From positions 50,344,001 to 50,408,000 of the forward strand of contig NC_073386.1 in assembly GCF_028641065.1 (NCBI RefSeq): a DNA stretch of 64,000 nucleotides, given 5' to 3'. Every line of letters begins with the position of its first letter. The first letter of the stretch is position 1. The notes beneath the pieces were generated by a model. The model did not search any database and had not been told where the DNA came from. It was given only the letters and a program-made list of their open reading frames with translations. The position numbers were made by a program, and so were the translations under genes. Source of the stretch: Leucoraja erinacea (taxonomy: Eukaryota). Below, piece after piece: positions 32,534-44,022 of this stretch.

Positions 32534-32864
32534 ATGGGGAAATTAATCGTGTACCTGGAGACTTTGTTTCTCATGGTCGTTGTTTGTCTAAGTACGTTAT
32601 TTGGTAAATTTATGAGTCTTCTTTTTCCTCAAACTCTGAGGAAGATTGTGTTGAAAGCTGGTTTGAAAAGCACCATGACTCAAAATCCAAAATTCAAATA
32701 TGAAGATTGGGGACCAACAATTTTCACTTTGGAGTTCGTGAAGACCGTGTTTAAACATCTATTAGTGAATATGGGAGACGAGGCTTTCAAGGGCGCCTTT
32801 GCTCCCAATACACGAGTCATTGACTTCGACAACAAAGAACATAACGTGCTTGATTTCTTGAAGG
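32534..32864 (+). CDS. DIO1: Type 1 iodothyronine deiodinase exon 1
   Basis: N-terminal hydrophobic segment, MTQNPKFKYEDWGPT, DEAFKG.FAPN; donor G|GTATGT; 331 nt. Confidence 0.95.
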
Positions 32865-35819
32865 GTATGTATGAATTACACGTAACTGCATCAAGAGTAA
32901 ACACGTTCATGTTTCCTTTGAAATTCAACAAATGTATTTAAACTATCGAATTCGTAATTTAAAAAAAAACGAATTATTTGATGGTGCAGGTAAAAAATAA
33001 ATCGAACTTTTTTAAAACACCAGTCAGTGCTAATAACGTTTATTCAAAGGCAAACATTACATTATATTTCGGAGGGTCAAACAAGAATTAACATTGCCAT
33101 GTTTTGGGGCATATTGACAAGCTGGAAGGAAAACAACCCTTGCGTTTTGGTGATTCTAAATGCGTGCAATGTTTCATATTCGAGATAAGAATTCAGCCTT
33201 GTGCAGGCATTACATAACTGACGAAGTGACACCACCCACTGTGTTTTATGTAATAAACTGCTGTTCGAGAAACGAATATTGTATCTGTTGACAGCAACCA
33301 CCATTTAATGTAATTCTGGCAAACCCACCGATAAAATACAAAAGCAGAATGTAGTTTTGCTGCTTTTAAACAGTGGAGTTATCTGTGTAGAACACGTTTT
33401 AAAATGAGGGCACACTAGCAATTAGGCGATAGAGCAAGAAAGGTCGTCGCGGAATTTCAAAGTTTAGATCTTTAAACTGGGATAAGGGCTGGAGAAGAAC
33501 AGAGAAACGGGGAGTTGGAGCTAGTGGTTTCATTCAAAGTTGTGAAACTAGTTCTGTTAAAGTAAATGTGCTCCCAGTTTACATAAAATGCAATTTGTAC
33601 TAGGATTCAGACCCCAGGCTAATGGGTTCACAGCACGGAAACTGTCTTTTTAGCCGAATTTGGCCAATCTGCACGTGTTTTGCCAATACCCTTTCCATAT
33701 ACCAAACACCCTCTTTGTGGAAAAGGTGCCCCTCAGTTTCCTATTAAATCTTTCCCTTCTCACCTAAAAGACTCCATCCATCTATCCTGTCTATTCTGCT
33801 CATTCCTTCTCTCCCGAGATGCTGCCTGTCCCGCTGAGTTACTTCAGCTTTTTGTGTCTATCTTCGGTTTAAACCAGCATCTGCAGTTCATTCTTACATA
33901 TTCCGCTCATGATCTTGTCTACCTCTGTAAGATCACCCCTTATCCTCTGCACTCTAAGGAGTAAATCTTAGCATGCCCAACATCTCCCTATAGCTCAGAC
34001 CCTCAAGTCCTGGCAAAATCCTGGTAAATCCTCTGCACTCTTTCCAGTTTAACAACATCTTTCCGACAGCAAGGTGACCAAAACTGAAGACAATACTCCA
34101 AATGTGGCTTCACCAACATCACAACTATAACATAACATCCCAACTTCTGTATTCAATATATTATGTTTAAGAGGGAACTGCAGATGCTGGAGAATCGAAG
34201 GTTACACAGAAAATCTGGAGAAAAACTCAGCGGGTGCAGCAGCATCTATGGAGCGAAGGAAATAGGCAACGTTTCGGGCCGAAACCCTTCTTCAGACTGA
34301 TCGGGGGTGGGGGTGGGTGGGGACAAGAAAGGGAAAAGGAGGAGTAGCCAGAAGGCTGGAGGGTGGGAGGAGACAGCAGGGGAGCTGAGGAAGGGGAGGA
34401 GACAGCAAGGACTAACAGAATTGGGAGAATTCGATGTTCATGCCCCGGGGGTGTAGACTCCCCAAACGGAATATGAGGTGCTGTTCCTCCAATTTCCGGT
34501 GCTGCTCGCTGTGGCCATGGAGGAGACCCAGGACAGAGAGGTCGGAGGCGGAGTGGGAGGGGGAGTTGAAGTGCTGAGCCACCGGGAGGTCAGCTTGGTT
34601 ATTGCGGACCGAGCGGAGGTGTTCGGCGAAACGATCGCCCAACCTCTGCTTGGTCTCACCGATATAGATCTGCTGGCATCTAGAGCAGCGGACGCAATAG
34701 ATGAGGTTGGAAGAGATGCAGATAAACCTCTGTCGCACCTGGAACGACTGCTTGGGTCCTTGGACGGAGTCGAGGGGGGAGGCAAAGGGACAAGTGTTGC
34801 ATCTCCTGCGGCCGCAAGGGAAAGTGCCCGGGGAGGGGGTGGACCGAGAGGGAAGGGAAGAATTGACAAGGGAGTTATGGAGGGAGCGGTCTTTGCGGAA
34901 GGCAGATATGGGGGGAGATGGGAAGATGTGGCGAGTAGTGGGGTCACGTTGGAGGTGGCGAAACTGACGGAGGATTATTTTTTGTATGTGACGGCTGGTG
35001 GGGTGAAAGGTGAGGACTAGGGGGACTCGGCCCTTGTTGCGAGTGCGGGGATGGGGAGAGAGAGCAGTGTTGCGGGGTATGGAAGAGACCCTGGTGCGAG
35101 CCTCATTTATGGTGGAGGAGGGGAACCCCCGTTCCCTGAATAGTGAGGACATTTCAGATGTCCTGGTGTGGAACGCCTCATCCGTGGAGCAGATGCGGCG
35201 TAGACGGAGGAATTGGGAGTAGGGGATGGAGTCCTTACAGGAAGCAGGGTGGGAAGAAGTGTAGTCCAGATAGCCATGGGAGTCAGTGGGTTTTATAGTG
35301 TATGTCGGTTAGAAGTCTATCACCTGCAATGGAGATGGTGAGGTCAAGGAATGGTAGGGAAGTGTCGGAAATGGTCCAGGTGTATTTCAGTGCCGGATGG
35401 AAATTAGTGGTGAAGTGGATGAAGTCAGTCAGTTGTGTGCGGGTGCAGGAGGTGGCACCAAAGCAGTCGTCGATGTAGCGGAGGTAGAGGTTGGGGATGG
35501 GGCCCTGGTATGTATTGAACAAGGATTGCTCGACGTAACCTACAAATAGGCAGGCATAGCTGGGGCCCATGCGTGTGCCCATAGCTACACCTTGTATTTG
35601 GAGGAAGTGGGAGGAGTCGAACGCGAAGTTATTGAGGGTAAGGACCAGCTCCGCTAGGCGGAGGAGAGTGTCAGTGGCTGGGTATGGGTTGCTTCTCTGG
35701 TCGAGGAAGAACCGGAGGGCTGTGAGACCATCGTGGTGGGGGATGGAGGTGTATAGTGATTGGACGTCCTGGTGGCCTGGTGCTCGTCAGTGGGGTCATG
35801 GTCCAGGGGTAAGTAGGAG

Positions 35820-37496
35820 GAGCACCAGGCCACCATCTCCAGCACCATCACCAACTTCATCCACTCCAATGCCCTACCCGACCGAGCCTCCAACCTCATC
35901 GTTCCCCAGCCCCGCACAGCCCGATTTTACCTTCTCCCTAAAATCCACAAACCTGATTGTCCCGGAAGACCCATTGTCTCCGCCTGTTCGTGCCCCACCG
36001 AACTCATTTCCAAATACCTTGACTCCATCCTATCACCCTTGGTTAAATCCCTCCCTACCTATGTCCAAGACACCTCACACACTCTCCGTCGTCTCCGCGC
36101 ATTCAATTCTCTAGGCCCTCACCCCCTCATCTTCACCATGGACGTCCAATCACTATACACCTCCATCCCCCACCACGATGGTCTCACAGCCCTCCGGTTC
36201 TTCCTCGACCAGAGAAGCAACCCATACCCAGCCACTGACACTCTCCTCCGCCTAGCGGAGCTGGTCCTTACCCTCAATAACTTCGCGTTCGACTCCTCCC
36301 ACTTCCTCCAAATACAAGGCGTAGCTATGGGCACACGCATGGGCCCCAGCTATGCCTGCCTATTTGTAGGTTACGTCGAGCAATCCTTGTTCAATACATA
36401 CCAGGGCCCCATCCCCAACCTCTACCTCCGCTACATCGACGACTGCTTTGGTGCCACCTCCTGCACCCGCACACAACTGACTGACTTCATCCACTTCACC
36501 ACTAATTTCCATCCGGCACTGAAATACACCTGGACCATTTCCGACACTTCCCTACCATTCCTTGACCTCACCATCTCCATTGCAGGTGATAGACTTCTAA
36601 CCGACATACACTATAAACCCACTGACTCCCATGGCTATCTGGACTACACTTCTTCCCACCCTGCTTCCTGTAAGGACTCCATCCCCTACTCCCAATTCCT
36701 CCGTCTACGCCGCATCTGCTCCACGGATGAGGCGTTCCACACCAGGACATCTGAAATGTCCTCACTATTCAGGGAACGGGGGTTCCCCTCCTCCACCATA
36801 AATGAGGCTCGCACCAGGGTCTCTTCCATACCCCGCAACACTGCTCTCTCTCCCCATCCCCGCACTCGCAACAAGGGCCGAGTCCCCCTAGTCCTCACCT
36901 TTCACCCCACCAGCCGTCACATACAAAAAATAATCCTCCGTCAGTTTCGCCACCTCCAACGTGACCCCACTACTCGCCACATCTTCCCATCTCCCCCCAT
37001 ATCTGCCTTCCGCAAAGACCGCTCCCTCCATAACTCCCTTGTCAATTCTTCCCTTCCCTCTCGGTCCACCCCCTCCCCGGGCACTTTCCCTTGCGGCCGC
37101 AGGAGATGCAACACTTGTCCCTTTGCCTCCCCCCTCGACTCCGTCCAAGGACCCAAGCAGTCGTTCCAGGTGCGACAGAGGTTTACCTGCATCTCTTCCA
37201 ACCTCATCTATTGCGTCCGCTGCTCTAGATGCCAGCAGATCTATATCGGTGAGACCAAGCGGAGGTTGGGCGATCGTTTCGCCGAACACCTCCGCTCGGT
37301 CCGCAATAACCAAGCTGACCTCCCGGTGGCTCAGCACTTCAACTCCCCCTCCCACTCCGCCTCCGACCTCTCTGTCCTGGGTCTCCTCCATGGCCACAGC
37401 GAGCAGCACCGGAAATTGGAGGAACAGCACCTCATATTCCGTTTGGGGAGTCTACACCCCCGGGGCATGAACATCGAATTCTCCCAATTCTGTTAG
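35820..37496 (+). CDS. 5'-truncated but uninterrupted Penelope RT plus GIY-YIG endonuclease ORF
   Basis: FYLLPKIHK, GRPIVS, MDVQSLYTSIP, QGVAMG, RYIDD, NLIY..YIGET. Confidence 0.9.
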   Translation, partial: EHQATISSTITNFIHSNALPDRASNLIVPQPRTARFYLLPKIHKPDCPGRPIVSACSCPTELISKYLDSILSPLVKSLPTYVQDTSHTLRRLRAFNSLGPHPLIFTMDVQSLYTSIPHHDGLTALRFFLDQRSNPYPATDTLLRLAELVLTLNNFAFDSSHFLQIQGVAMGTRMGPSYACLFVGYVEQSLFNTYQGPIPNLYLRYIDDCFGATSCTRTQLTDFIHFTTNFHPALKYTWTISDTSLPFLDLTISIAGDRLLTDIHYKPTDSHGYLDYTSSHPASCKDSIPYSQFLRLRRICSTDEAFHTRTSEMSSLFRERGFPSSTINEARTRVSSIPRNTALSPHPRTRNKGRVPLVLTFHPTSRHIQKIILRQFRHLQRDPTTRHIFPSPPISAFRKDRSLHNSLVNSSLPSRSTPSPGTFPCGRRRCNTCPFASPLDSVQGPKQSFQVRQRFTCISSNLIYCVRCSRCQQIYIGETKRRLGDRFAEHLRSVRNNQADLPVAQHFNSPSHSASDLSVLGLLHGHSEQHRKLEEQHLIFRLGSLHPRGMNIEFSQFC

Positions 37497-38376: not shown

Positions 38377-38520
38377 ATAACCGACCACTGGTATTGAGTT
38401 TTGGAAGCTGCTCCTGACCTCCATTTCTTTTCAAGTTTGACGAGTTCAAAACACTCGTCAAAGACTTCAACTCTGTAGCTGATTTCCTCATTGTCTATAT
38501 TCAGGAGGCACATGCCACGG
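38377..38520 (+). CDS. DIO1: DIO1 exon 2 with the selenocysteine codon TGA at 38415-38417 (Sec124)
   Basis: [16 protein letters not shown]...[14 protein letters not shown]; 144 nt, phase 1-1, AG/GT. Confidence 0.97.
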
Positions 38521-39551: not shown

Positions 39552-39751
39552 ATGGCTGGGCTTTCAAAAACAACATGGATATTAAAAAACATCAAACACT
39601 AAGTGATCGTTTCAATGCTGCAAGGATGTTACTGAAAGAGGAGCCACCCTGTCCAGTGGTTGTAGATTCTATGGATAATATGACCAGTGCTAAATATGGA
39701 GCAATGCCAGAGAGACTATATGTGGTGCTCAATGGCAAAATTATTTACAAG
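39552..39751 (+). CDS. DIO1: DIO1 exon 3
   Basis: [35 protein letters not shown]; 200 nt. Confidence 0.97.
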
Positions 39752-40611
39752 GTAACTAAATATCCTGACATTTAGAGATTACTTGCAGGCTAAATTAATT
39801 TTTACTTGAAAATATTAACTTCACTGCTAGACTTTTATCTGATATTTTGCTTCTATCCAAGTACAAAAGAAGACTAAATCGTCCAAAATTTACACCATTC
39901 ATCCACACTCACCTGTTCCTGAAGACTGTAATCTAATATTGATTAGCTAAGTTATAATTTCACACTCATAAGTCTGTTAATTATCCAGTGCATCAATGCT
40001 ATCATTGGCTCTGGTCTGAATATTTTGTCCACTTTCCTTAAACAAAAATATGCTTTCAACTCTCTTGCTCTGAGGAGGGAAAATAGCCGGGCCATGGCTG
40101 CTCCATAGACAAATATCAGCCATTCAAACTAGTTAGATTAGACTGTAGATTAGATTTCTGTACATGCACAGAAAAAAAACTTACTAGACTTTGATTAAAG
40201 CTGCTATTTCCATATTGACAGTCTTTTTAATCCAAGACAAAAGGTGCCTGAATGAATATAACAGTTTACTGGTTCCTGTACATCAATCTAGTTTAATTTT
40301 TCTTAGAGATGCCAGTATGTCATACCAATGTTTACCGCCACAAAAAAGTATTGCATATTAATAATATGAATCGCTGTCTTTGCCATTAAAAAAAATTCTT
40401 ATGAAAGGAAACTTGAACTAAAAAAGATTGTGGTTTAAAGGGAATAATTTATGCTTGCAGCAATAATAATCATCAATTCAATGTTATTGATAGAAAGAAT
40501 CGTATTTGGTTAGCTATGGGTCTAAGACGTGGTGAATCAATGCACTTTCAGTCTTTTTCAAGAGATAATGTTTAATTTATCACTGTACCTCTATATTTTT
40601 GTACATTCCAG

Positions 40612-40677
40612 GGTGACAGGGGACCTTGGGGATACAATCCAGAAAAAGTACGATTAATATTGCAAAACCAAAGTTAA
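40612..40677 (+). CDS. DIO1: DIO1 exon 4 coding part (GDRGPWGYNPEKVRLILQNQS*); total CDS 741 nt, 246 aa
   Basis: Acceptor TTCCAG; GPWGYNPE motif; TAA. Confidence 0.95.
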   Translation, partial: GDRGPWGYNPEKVRLILQNQS

Positions 40678-40775
40678 GCCACTTGCTGGCAGAATGTCGT
40701 ACTGTTGTATTTACAGAGGAAGATTCTGTGGAATACGTGAACAAATGTAACCATGAACAAGTCAGACTAACTTCC

Positions 40776-40850
40776 TTTTCCATATTTTTGATGATTTTCT
40801 CAGTTTTTAAATTGTTACGACTGGGAGCTGAAAAATTGAAATATGGAGGA
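40776..40850 (+). promoter_or_regulatory. Proximal SECIS element candidate (canonical core, form-1-like)
   Basis: Helix I TCCATATTT/AAATATGGA (13 bp with GU); ATGA 40791-40794 opposite TGAA 40829-40832; helix II TTCTCAGTT/GACTGGGAG; apical AAA 40809-40811. Confidence 0.7.
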
Positions 40851-41129
40851 AAAATGACTTGGTATTTGGTTAATGTTCAGGTTTCAATACAGATGGTGCC
40901 ACTTGTATGTTTAACCTGTGAAAAAACTTCTGTTGTGCTTGAGGGATGGGAATCTGGTGGTGGGATGTACTTCATTAACAATTGTGACTACACTAACATT
41001 TTCATAGAATGGGACTTGTTTCCTGAAATTACATTTGATTTGTGTATCCCTGCATTCCCATTGCTGAACTAGGGTACTGTTCGAGTCCAAGAAAATAAGA
41101 GCCAGAACGCGAGAACCCTAGAAAAAACT

Positions 41130-41815
41130 AAGTCATGCAGCCCTTTGAATCGGCTCCTTCATTCAATACAATTGTGGCTGATCCATTATCGCAAAAGTTC
41201 TCATCCTCTCCCTATATCTTTTGCTGCCTTCTGCATCCAGAAATATATGCGTCCTCCTTGCATATAATCAAGTGATTTGGCCTCTACTGTCCTCTATCAT
41301 AACAAAATTCACAGATTCATCACCCTCAAATTTCTCCTCGTCACAATCCTACGTTTTACCCTGTATCTAAGACAGCGACCCACTGAATCAAAACACCCCA
41401 GCCAGGGGAATGATTCTTCCCACATCCAATTTGTCTAATCCTAACGATTCCCTTGCATTCTTCTTTAACTCCAATGACTACAGGCCTAATAACCTAATTG
41501 TTCTTAACACAAAGATGTGCCTATCTGAAATCAGTCTGGTGAACCTTCACTGCACTCATTTATGGCAAGGATATCCTTTCTTAGATATGGAGACCAAAAT
41601 GGAGACCAAAAATTAGATACAATACCTTGGTGTGGTCTCACCCAGGCCTGGTATAATTGCAACAAGATATCCTTGCTCTTTAAATCTTTTCTTAAGAAGC
41701 TCCTTAAATCTTCCTGCCTAAGGCTGTAACTACTTGCTGCATCTGCATTTTTGCTTTTGATAACTAGAATACAAGAACACTCCCGTCTCTTTGTACAATA
41801 ACACTTCCAAATCCA
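41130..41815 (-). mobile_element. Old CR1 fragment inside the presumed DIO1 3' UTR
   Basis: KDILLQLYQAWVRPH..FWSPYLRKDILA. Confidence 0.7.
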
Positions 41816-42383
41816 ACACAATTTAAATAATTGGGTGGTACAGTGGCACAGCGATAGAGTTGCTGCCTTGCAGCGGAAGAGACCTGGGTTCAATAATGAC
41901 TGTAGGCACTGTCCAGATGGAGTTTGTACATTTTCCCTGGGACCACATGGGTTTTCCTACCGTGCTGTCTGTTAACCAATTTTCAACCTATGCCATTACT
42001 CTCATTATGATGCTCTTTCATTTTACACAAACCTTCAACTTTATGAAAGGCTTACTGAAATTCTATGCACAGTGCATCCACAGCTTTCTATTTTCTACTG
42101 CAGTTTATTTTGAGGATGTAACTCATGTTTGTCAAATATAATTTTCTTTCCAGAAATTCATGTAAACTTTGTCTAATTGTGTTGATATTTTCCAAATGTT
42201 GTAGCATTTTACCTGATTCTGATGTTAAGCTAACTGAACCCTACTTTCATATTTGTTGTCTCTATCTTTTTTTCCAATTTTTTGTATTGTCCATCATTTA
42301 TCAGCCAAGATTATTCTGCTTCACTTGACATTTAATTGTAATTAAGAAATGTAGAATGTCAGCCACTGCAAGTACAATGAATT

Positions 42384-42451
42384 TAGCTGTACTGTTTATG
42401 AAGATTACAGCCAAAATTCTAACTGTAATCTAATGTTTTGAAGTGTAGCTA
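42384..42451 (+). promoter_or_regulatory. Distal SECIS-like element with non-canonical core (TAAT instead of TGAT)
   Basis: Helix I TAGCTGTAC/GTGTAGCTA; TGTTT-ATGA; helix II GATTACAG/CTGTAATC; CC-AAAA 11 nt after ATGA. Confidence 0.7.
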
Positions 42452-42609
42452 GGAGCATTTACTTTGGTGGTTGTTTTTTTAAATTCTCAACAATTATTCA
42501 ACTGTAGTTTTGTACATAGTCATTGTACCAAACAGAACATTTAAAGTTATGAAATGTTTAATACATTTTATCCAAACTCTGTTTCAGATTTGGTTTTAAG
42601 CAAATTTAA

Positions 42610-42718
42610 AATAAATGTCTTCAATTTTGAAATGTTGTGAAATCTTATTCAGATTTTGATCATTCTTTCCAGAGCCTCCAATGAAGATTGCAATGTTGCA
42701 AAGAAAAAATAATTTATT
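42610..42718. terminator. Convergent polyA signals: DIO1 AATAAA 42610-42615 (+), IFT25 AATAAA 42718-42713 (-)
   Basis: Hexamers positioned after the distal SECIS and about 90 nt after the IFT25 stop. Confidence 0.55.
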
Positions 42719-42809
42719 CACAAGAATAATTACAATAATTTTTTACATTTATAAATTCGAAAAATTGAACTGTGAAGGCCAATTTTGTTAACAGTTGTGC
42801 TCTGTTGCC

Positions 42810-42917
42810 TTAAGTGAGTTCCTCTGTACCTTCTATTGTCACCTTGTGCACTGACACAAAATGGTCGAAACCTGATTTAATAACAAATCGTAGATGTGTT
42901 GCCCTTGTTCCATCTAG
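42810..42917 (-). CDS. IFT25: IFT25/HSPB11 exon 5 (LDGTRATHLRFVIKSGFDHFVSVHKVTIEGTEELT*); total 426 nt, 141 aa
   Basis: Acceptor TCTCTGCAG; LRF.I.S.FDHF.SVH motif; TAA. Confidence 0.93.
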   Translation of the reverse strand, partial: LDGTRATHLRFVIKSGFDHFVSVHKVTIEGTEELT

Positions 42918-43809
42918 CTGCAGAGAAAATATATAAATAAATCAGTTTTTTAAGACGAAAAGCTACTGCTACAGAAGTAGCTTAGCTCAGAGCACTGACC
43001 CAAGTGGAGTAAACTACATATTCGACTCCTAGTCATTTAGTTTATTAAAACTAATATGACCAAAGAAACAAAATTTGGTTTGATGTCTGCGTTAGGTACA
43101 AGCAGCCAAGAGTTTTTGTTCATGCAATGAACTCCACTGGAAAATTCTTGTGCAGAATAAAAACAGGCTAGACCTCAGATTTGTCTGCAGCCAAGATTAT
43201 GGAATAATTACAGAAGCAAGATTCTGAATGCTGATGCGCAGCAAAGCCTACTTTTCCATATAAGGTACTAAAAACAAACTGGCTTTGTAAATGAAATAAT
43301 GAAATGATACCATTCATATTAATATATAAAAAAACACTTAAAAACATTGTACAGGTCATCACCACTTTCCATGAGGTGGTTACTATTCTATAAAATGCTC
43401 TGCATCGCCACTGCTTGCATCAAGTAAGTGAGTTGAAAAATAATTTATGAATGCTTCCCCCACAAATTCTGTAAGACCAAATTTTATGTTTTCACTCATT
43501 AGCTTCTCATATTTTCTTGAAATAGATTAATAGATTTCATTCAGCTCACAAATCTACAATATCAGAGCATTCCGATTAATCTCATTCTCCACTTTTCCTA
43601 CAATCTCTTTTACATGCCTATCAACCCGCCACCCCTAACTCATAGCTTGCCCCAACAGTACTTTATAGATCATGAATGGTTGTGGCTAAAGGGCAATTAT
43701 AGTCAGTCATTCATAACCTGTATTTTGCTTATTACTTCTCTATTGAATGCCCTACCTCTAATCATTCCATATTGAGCAATACAATATTTGAGATAAAATA
43801 TGTACTTAC

Positions 43810-43853
43810 TGTAAATTCTTCCAACTGAAGCTGTTCCTCAGAGCGCTCAAGTT
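43810..43853 (-). CDS. IFT25: IFT25 exon 4 (ELERSEEQLQLEEFT)
   Basis: 44 nt, AG/GT, frame-consistent; QLQ.EE. Confidence 0.88.
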
Positions 43854-43953
43854 CTGTTTAGATAAAAGATATCACCAGAAGATGAAACCTACCACATAAC
43901 TTTTCTGTAGAAAGTCCAATGAGTTAATTCAAAAGTTTACTGAAAATTCTTAC

Positions 43954-44022
43954 CGCTCTTAGCTAAAGGTTCAAAGTCCACGGGATCTTTTTCTGTACTT
44001 TTCTCAATACTAAGTCTGCGGA
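43954..44022 (-). CDS. IFT25: IFT25 exon 3 (VRRLSIEKSTEKDPVDFEPLAKS)
   Basis: 69 nt, AG/GT; IEKST.K.PVDFE. Confidence 0.92.

Follow-up and report, generated by a model that had tools for sequence, protein, structure and literature searches.

Results

A Deiodinase Gene With Two SECIS-Shaped Hairpins in Its 3′ Untranslated Region

The stretch of Leucoraja erinacea DNA analyzed here (64,000 nucleotides (nt) of contig NC_073386.1, positions 50,344,001 to 50,408,000 of the forward strand; hereafter the window, numbered from its first letter) carries a deiodinase gene on its plus strand. This gene's 3′ untranslated region (UTR) was found to hold, on one shared transcript, two hairpins shaped like selenocysteine insertion sequence (SECIS) elements, the first lying near the stop codon (proximal hairpin) and the second near the polyadenylation site (distal hairpin). 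The proximal hairpin has a complete SECIS core, and in the distal one an A stands where the 3′ GA should have its invariant G. We tentatively read this arrangement as a SECIS hand-over, in which the proximal element may have replaced an ancestral distal one; this reading draws on the letters, folds and transcripts described below.

Four coding exons, all on the plus strand, were recognized from the table of open reading frames (ORFs) and their translations. Exon 1 (about 32534-32864) is followed by exon 2 (about 38377-38520), which carries the selenocysteine (Sec) codon, an in-frame TGA at 38415-38417 within SFGSCS-U-PPF. Exon 3 (39552-39751) ends in ...GKIIYK and was placed by its ORF, by a splice joint in RNA contigs and by matches to deiodinase chains in PDB, and the coding part of exon 4 (40612-40677) reads GDRGPWGYNPEKVRLILQNQS, its stop codon TAA at 40675-40677 being read directly from the letters. 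The joint between exons 3 and 4 (39749/51 to 40610/12, with GT..AG borders and 860 bases skipped) was present in RNA contigs of organism B (data set X2) and organism C (X10), so both runs hold spliced RNA of the deiodinase gene.

When exon 3 was searched singly, it matched the PDB chains of type III deiodinase (47 bits) and type II deiodinase (27.3 bits), and exon 3 alone gave no match to a type I deiodinase chain in PDB. The ORF following the Sec codon in a relative (P0001), encoded on a 1948-nt transcript contig, was 88% identical with the same C-terminal ending, and it carries the precomputed Pfam domain PF00837. At the level of sequence comparison, this domain and the PDB matches confirmed the gene product as a deiodinase. 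Its identity as DIO1 is putative, the gene being so assigned from its multi-exon structure and from a C-terminal ending that we take to resemble that of DIO1. The reading frame, the splice sites and the Sec codon are all preserved, and expression of the spliced mRNA was seen under three organism labels.

Structure of the Proximal and Distal Hairpins

The two hairpins can be read against published SECIS rules. Among 286 curated elements (62 of type I and 224 of type II), the quartet's UGA/GA alone is invariable, with a single exception that has GGA on the 5′ side; helix 2 measures between 11 and 16 bp, G-Y is over-represented just above the quartet, as is U at -4 in type I, and the DI1 SECIS is of type I in all species except zebrafish (PMC2647825). 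Tandem GA pairs are needed if SBP2 and L30 are to bind (PMC2761289, in excerpt). When RNAs were selected with SBP2 by systematic evolution of ligands by exponential enrichment (SELEX), all selected RNAs contained UGAU as well as the G that takes part in the A.G pair, and a purine-pyrimidine pair was preferred above them (PMC1874613, in excerpt).

The proximal hairpin was recognized on the plus strand at 40772-40851, beginning 95 nt past the stop codon, by its letters, by folding, by a pattern scan and by shuffles. Its 5′ core consists of an unpaired A and UGAU (A-TGAT at 40791-40795), the ATGA at 40791-40794 standing 114 nt after the stop. Helix I pairs 40779-40788 with 40838-40847 (10 bp) and 40772-40775 with 40848-40851 (4 bp); counted ungapped, it has 13 pairs with at most one mismatch. 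Helix II (40797-40805/40819-40827) has 9 bp and is closed by an apical loop of 13 nt, in which an AAA (40809-40811) begins 3 nt into the loop. The 3′ core, TGA-A at 40829-40832, conforms to KGAW and forms the tandem G.A/A.G with the 5′ UGA, and a U.U pair stacks on the helix II side of this tandem. The hairpin matches UGAN/KGAW and carries U at -4. Its helix 2 counts 14 levels, made up of the quartet, a single U x C mismatch and the 9 bp of helix II; this count falls inside the published range of 11-16 bp (criteria of PMC2647825), but the AAA, 14 nt from the AUGA, stands further off than the 11 nt of the distal element.

In the shuffle test the proximal segment had a free minimum free energy (MFE) of -22.2 kcal/mol (z -2.54), and 5 of 200 shuffles folded as well. 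In the segment used for constrained folding the free MFE was likewise -22.2 kcal/mol, and -20.3 kcal/mol was retained with the quartet and the A-run forced unpaired; the upper stem-loop alone gave -7.8 kcal/mol. The free fold differs from the SECIS form, the GA and UGA letters being paired in a shifted register.

The distal hairpin (42383-42452, plus strand) is of a type I SECIS-like form, as judged from an Rfam SECIS_1 score, from folding and from its letters. An unpaired A and UGAA make up its 5′ core (A-TGAA at 42398-42402, with ATGA at 42398-42401). Helix I (42383-42393/42442-42452) has 11 bp and helix II (42403-42410/42423-42430) 8 bp, so that helix 2, the quartet plus 8 bp, counts 12 levels. 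The AAAA at 42413-42416 lies 11 nt after the AUGA in a 12-nt apical loop, as in the type I form, and both the length of helix 2 and the placement of the AAR agree with SECIS rules. A G-C pair stands above the quartet and U stands at -4, as in the consensus. The distal segment had a free MFE of -21.9 kcal/mol in the shuffle test (z -2.77; 2/200 shuffles folded as well); in the constrained-fold segment the values were -19.1 kcal/mol free and -17.3 kcal/mol with the quartet and the A-run forced unpaired, and -6.5 kcal/mol was obtained for the upper stem-loop alone.

It is the 3′ core that sets the distal hairpin apart. It reads UAAU (T-A-A-T at 42431-42434), not UGAU, and so departs from KGAW; in the Rfam alignment the consensus CUGAUg stands against CUAAUG, placing the A at 42432 (plus strand) on the invariant G of the 3′ GA, which corresponds to kink-turn (k-turn) position 2n in our own mapping between the two nomenclatures. 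This single letter separates the hairpin from the textbook core, all other features being intact. SECISearch3 drops candidates without GA-AG in the core (PMC3753652, in excerpt), and the distal hairpin fails that filter. The A was directly read in one assembly only. An RNA contig of organism A (X1) spans 42432, and none of the four listed differences, out of five in all, falls there, which softly suggests that this contig carries the A as a second data set. The X2 contig ends at 42428, four bases before the site.

Covariance-Model Searches and Chance Expectation

No match at the gathering score was found by Rfam in the whole window. Over 40500-42800 at E<=10, the distal hairpin was the sole match of SECIS_1 (RF00031), with 17.4 bits and E 7.4, which lies below the gathering score of 35; in a 96-nt scan of the distal hairpin, SECIS_1 was the top family (E 0.31). 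No further SECIS match was found by Rfam in 42560-44000. Matches of microRNA, small nucleolar RNA and other Rfam families over the proximal hairpin reached 11.9-21 bits against gathering scores of 37-83 and were rejected as noise.

A home-made, loose SECIS descriptor was then applied (R-TGA, 10-14 nt, AA and a 3′ GA, with 7 or more pairs in helix II, 6 or more in helix I and at most one mismatch in each), its upper spacing limit of 14 having been chosen with the candidate already known. It matched 18 places on both strands of the window (128 kb), among which the proximal hairpin ranks first with 10 + 13 pairs, and the runner-up has a stem sum of 19. When the 1944-nt UTR was dinucleotide-shuffled 1500 times, 230 of the shuffles held some loose match; helix II of at least 9 plus helix I of at least 10 pairs was seen in 3/1500, a sum of 20 was reached in 5/1500, and the sum of 23 shown by the proximal hairpin was reached in none of the 1500, figures to be read with the fact that shuffles understate the abundance of hairpins in real DNA. 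It follows from the shuffles and from the window ranks that the proximal hairpin exceeds what AU-rich sequence yields by itself. With the descriptor relaxed to AA for GA, the distal hairpin scored 9 + 13, in the same class as the proximal one.

Comparison With a Relative

The RNA contigs of organism C differ from the window by 29 substitutions in the 431 positions of 40678-41108 (6.7%). These are distributed as 3/94 between the stop codon and the hairpin, 5/80 (6.2%) in the proximal hairpin, 8/129 in the next 129 nt and 13/128 in the following 128 nt. The five changes within the hairpin are located at 40779 (helix I), at 40814 and 40815 (apical loop) and at 40835 and 40836 (3′ internal loop), so four of the five are in loops, and the ATGA, the AAA, the TGA and helix II are unaltered. 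In the rival non-SECIS minimum-energy fold, the changes at 40835/36 would disrupt two pairs, and the SECIS fold would lose none to them. The pattern as a whole may be compatible, weakly, with a maintained SECIS form; at 6% divergence a core often escapes by chance, two of the changes are adjacent doublets, and the comparison is with one relative only.

The differences considered are the 40 listed of 173, among which the proximal hairpin of organism C is apparently covered, the distal hairpin falling among the other 133. No bases are deleted from the distal hairpin in organism C, given that its bin depths are explained by a 12-nt deletion at 42511. The possibility that the proximal hairpin is a duplicate of the distal one was ruled out, the two having no in-register alignment, and the 5′ arm of the proximal hairpin is unique within the window at up to 3 mismatches. 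When the protein collection was searched for spurious ORFs from the UTRs of relatives, 3 proteins were obtained, all from near-identical organisms, and a second search gave none; a metagenome scan returned 0 stretches.

One Transcript and One Likely Polyadenylation Site

Both hairpins are included in a single continuous transcribed stretch on the plus strand, 40678-42621, as covered by RNA contigs. The X1 contig of organism A (1791 nt, 40831-42621) stops 6 nt past an AATAAA on the plus strand at 42610-42615, and the signal and this contig end, the only clear 3′ end, together mark the likely polyadenylation site (42610-42621). Contigs at 40610-41815 and 41886-42428 were obtained for organism B, and for organism C a spliced contig reaching 41869 and a second one at 41840-42914; in the host mRNA of the two hairpins, the contigs of organisms A, B and C break only at a short interspersed nuclear element (SINE)-like element. 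Stranded polyA RNA reads (X21) covered the UTR at a depth of only about 0-2, with the first mate always on the minus strand, so the raw-read evidence is thin.

No AATAAA or ATTAAA was found between 40601 and 42609, the one at 42610 being the sole signal from the stop codon to 42900, and no ends of RNA molecules are listed anywhere, the interval between the hairpins included. With no signal there and with contigs running through, a short isoform ending between the hairpins is unsupported. A preliminary description of this DNA had suggested that alternative polyadenylation might select one or both elements, and for the same reasons this proposal finds no support. Its layout of the UTR was borne out: it had described a proximal hairpin with a 13-bp helix I, an AUGA/UGA core and an AAA 14 nt from the AUGA, and, about 1.6 kb further on and about 160 nt before an AATAAA, a second SECIS-shaped hairpin, with CR1 and SINE remnants lying between them. 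Letters, folds and RNA contigs place both hairpins there in one transcribed UTR, and the distance from the end of the distal hairpin to the AATAAA at 42610 was measured as 159 nt.

The remnants between the hairpins span 41436-41960, as seen from depth spikes, loose contig ends and ORF similarity. A repeat at 41436-41556 showed a word depth of 10925 in X10, and a very high-copy, SINE-like stretch at about 41830-41960 showed a word depth of 20970 in X10 and 144/149 reads in X21. Between them, at about 41600-41690 on the minus strand, is a decayed ORF fragment of a long interspersed nuclear element (LINE), of which the window holds another copy that is identical at 13 of 28 positions (E 5e-6). 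Both high-copy repeats of the UTR are common to organism C and were therefore inserted before the split from it.

In organism C the word depth of the distal-UTR contig (41840-42914) was 67.2 against 136.4 for the proximal one (40610-41869), and the distal contig continues past the AATAAA at 42610 to 42914; this may reflect unevenness of coverage, the presence of shorter isoforms or the merging of the contig with a convergent transcript. X21 reads at 42767-43008 have their first mate on the plus strand, opposite to the reads of the DIO1 UTR, which indicates that they come from an opposite-strand transcript. This minus-strand transcript (42766-43008) appears to stop a short way downstream of the DIO1 polyadenylation site. 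Short X1 and X2 contigs fit only 42766/42849-42917, and no obvious ORF was seen in the minus-strand frames at 42766-43008.

Two further features of the gene were observed. Intron 1 contains a near-identical, inverted pair of retroelement ORFs (34412-35582 on the minus strand and 36039-37496 on the plus strand) with reverse-transcriptase-like and GIY-YIG-like parts, resembling a Penelope-like element pair. A 148-codon open frame on the plus strand (40626-41072) runs over both the last part of the coding sequence and the proximal hairpin. It was called by gene callers on RNA contigs of near-identical organisms (P0002-P0004), proteins that have no Pfam domain on record, and it is most likely spurious.

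Discussion

A Possible Hand-Over Between Two SECIS Elements

The distal core is without the invariant G and the proximal core is complete, which makes a takeover a live reading, and two things together, a top-ranked hairpin with a complete core and an old element flawed in one letter, tilt the balance to a hand-over. We hold this account to be possible, with rather less than an even chance of being right: a hairpin arisen de novo near the stop codon would decode the DIO1 UGA, and a 400-million-year-old distal element would be starting to decay through a single hit in its invariant GA. The preliminary description had proposed that a new or duplicated proximal SECIS took over; the takeover survives on the core letters, and the duplication fell with the lack of an in-register alignment.

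In form, the distal hairpin is like the type I SECIS of vertebrate DIO1, with AAAA in a 12-nt loop, an AUGA with an unpaired A, G-C above the quartet, U at -4 and a position near the 3′ end of the UTR; it differs in having UAAU for UGAU and in scoring 17.4 against the gathering score of 35. Under a hand-over, an ancestral type I SECIS would have been retained in the DIO1-like mRNA about 190 nt before the polyadenylation site and would have lost its invariant G through the A at 42432, leaving SBP2 binding probably poor or absent. An unrelated AU-rich hairpin, 95 nt past the stop, holds everything that a SECIS core needs, and it would recruit SBP2 and eEFSec/Sec-tRNA and so decode the UGA lying 482 nt upstream in the mRNA. 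Any new SECIS is no more than a hairpin formed by chance that turns out to function. Were the proximal hairpin functional, loss of the distal one would be neutral and expected sooner or later; were it nonfunctional, a hit in the invariable G of the sole SECIS in an expressed, intact gene would need tolerance of A.A, a rare allele or early decay of the gene, each of which is rare. The function of the proximal hairpin, the disablement of the distal one and the order of events are what we infer from these structures.

Several observations weigh against a hand-over. In the proximal hairpin, G.U accounts for 3 of the 9 pairs of helix II, the AAA lies 14 nt after the AUGA as compared with 11 nt in the distal element, and the U x C mismatch just above the core occupies the position where SBP2 prefers a purine-pyrimidine pair. 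No match of RF00031 to this hairpin was found at E<=10 in scans of 2301 nt and 151 nt, the latter listing matches of other families down to 11.9 bits. At 5/80 against a regional 29/431 it forms no conservation island, and no compensatory change was seen in it in the comparison with organism C only. The distal hairpin, for its part, is otherwise perfect, which may also be consistent with continuing constraint. Human Sep15 (SELENOF) has an upstream SECIS-like structure that is reported not to function, and two SECIS of unknown function are predicted for Ciona SelW1 (PMC2874816, in excerpt). Each of these genes, as far as the excerpt goes, has one Sec and, like the present gene, an additional SECIS-like hairpin placed upstream in the 3′ UTR; Sep15 differs in having a canonical element downstream and the reportedly nonfunctional one upstream, whereas here the core defect is in the downstream element. 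The preliminary description had spoken of two SECIS elements and had proposed a check against Rfam SECIS models. The shapes stand, and the check recovered the distal hairpin at 17.4 bits, below 35, and not the proximal one; function is not borne out, as neither reaches the gathering score, the proximal hairpin has no SECIS match and the distal one fails the GA-AG filter.

Alternative Readings

The most serious rival takes the distal hairpin for a SECIS that still works with a non-canonical A.A pair at 2b.2n, and the proximal one for a fortuitous AU-rich hairpin. The proximal hairpin fails Rfam, and its conservation does not exceed that of its flanks. Within the UTR, Rfam SECIS_1 matches nothing but the distal hairpin, which has SECIS_1 as its top family in the 96-nt scan; it is, moreover, of type I, as are DI1 elements except that of zebrafish (PMC2647825), and its G-C above the quartet, its U at -4 and the rest of its features are intact. 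Natural k-turns lend this reading some plausibility. Kt-23 of Thelohania solenopsae has A at 2n, folds normally and binds L7Ae (PMC3985660, in excerpt), and Kt-23 of Thermus is also off-consensus at the bulge-distal pair (PMC2790904, in excerpt). Like the distal hairpin, the Thelohania Kt-23 has A for the G of the bulge-distal A.G pair and, in the excerpted account, is still bound by a protein of the L7Ae family; it differs in being an rRNA k-turn seen with archaeal L7Ae in a crystal, not a SECIS with SBP2. Set against this, curated SECIS sets show no variation in the 3′ GA and the SBP2 SELEX recovered the G, and were an A at 42432 well tolerated, earlier sightings would be expected. A working distal element would also make the proximal hairpin a coincidence, with a chance of roughly 0.002 by the shuffles and <0.015 by the real window. 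On balance we consider this reading unlikely, if still a substantial contender.

That both hairpins act as SECIS on the one mRNA, a weakened distal element and the proximal one being additive or backing each other up, appears improbable. The single transcript and the stability of both hairpins in the SECIS form speak for it, as does SELENOP, in which two SECIS in one UTR can both work (PMC2761289; PMC3316567, both in excerpt). The likeness to SELENOP extends to two SECIS-shaped hairpins in one last exon and one UTR. SELENOP differs in having many Sec codons and elements on average 334 nt apart (PMC3316567, in excerpt), as compared here with one Sec codon, a spacing of 1.6 kb, transposon remnants in between and hairpins of putative function. 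Each of the two hairpins has a defect that argues against function alone, a single Sec codon has no known need for two elements, and there is no sign of a polyadenylation switch.

The chance that neither hairpin supports efficient Sec insertion is judged to be similarly small. In that case the A at 42432 would be a rare null allele or a base error of the assembled individual, or DIO1 would be in early decay in this lineage, and the proximal hairpin would be a coincidence at the same cost as above. The letter was directly read in one assembly, and the contig of X2, ending at 42428, falls short of it; Dio1-deficient mice are viable with a mild phenotype, and relaxed constraint is conceivable. 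The intact frame, splice sites and Sec codon are evidence to the contrary. If the UGA in exon 2 of 4 were taken as a stop, the mRNA should be exposed to nonsense-mediated decay, and yet it was present in runs of three organism labels. Moreover, the X1 contig comes from a separate study and covers 42432, with none of its four listed differences (of five) there. Two functional SECIS with a polyadenylation switch between them, lastly, is the least supported reading, there being a single signal and continuous contigs.

Implications

SECIS elements have been treated as fixed, one per single-Sec gene and with an invariable GA, and finders of the SECISearch3 type discard others. In a shallow literature search of titles and the starts of abstracts, no description of two SECIS in one DIO1 UTR was found among the papers listed, and most of the outcomes considered here would be new. 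If the distal hairpin works with A.A, it would be a natural exception to the "invariable" core, and recognition by SBP2 would be more plastic than SELEX suggested; if neither hairpin works, the locus would represent an early stage of DIO1 loss in a cartilaginous fish. If the proximal hairpin works, SECIS elements would be able to arise de novo and replace old ones, and annotation restricted to conserved elements would miss real signals. A hand-over, if true, would be the first SECIS turnover caught in the act in a vertebrate single-Sec gene.

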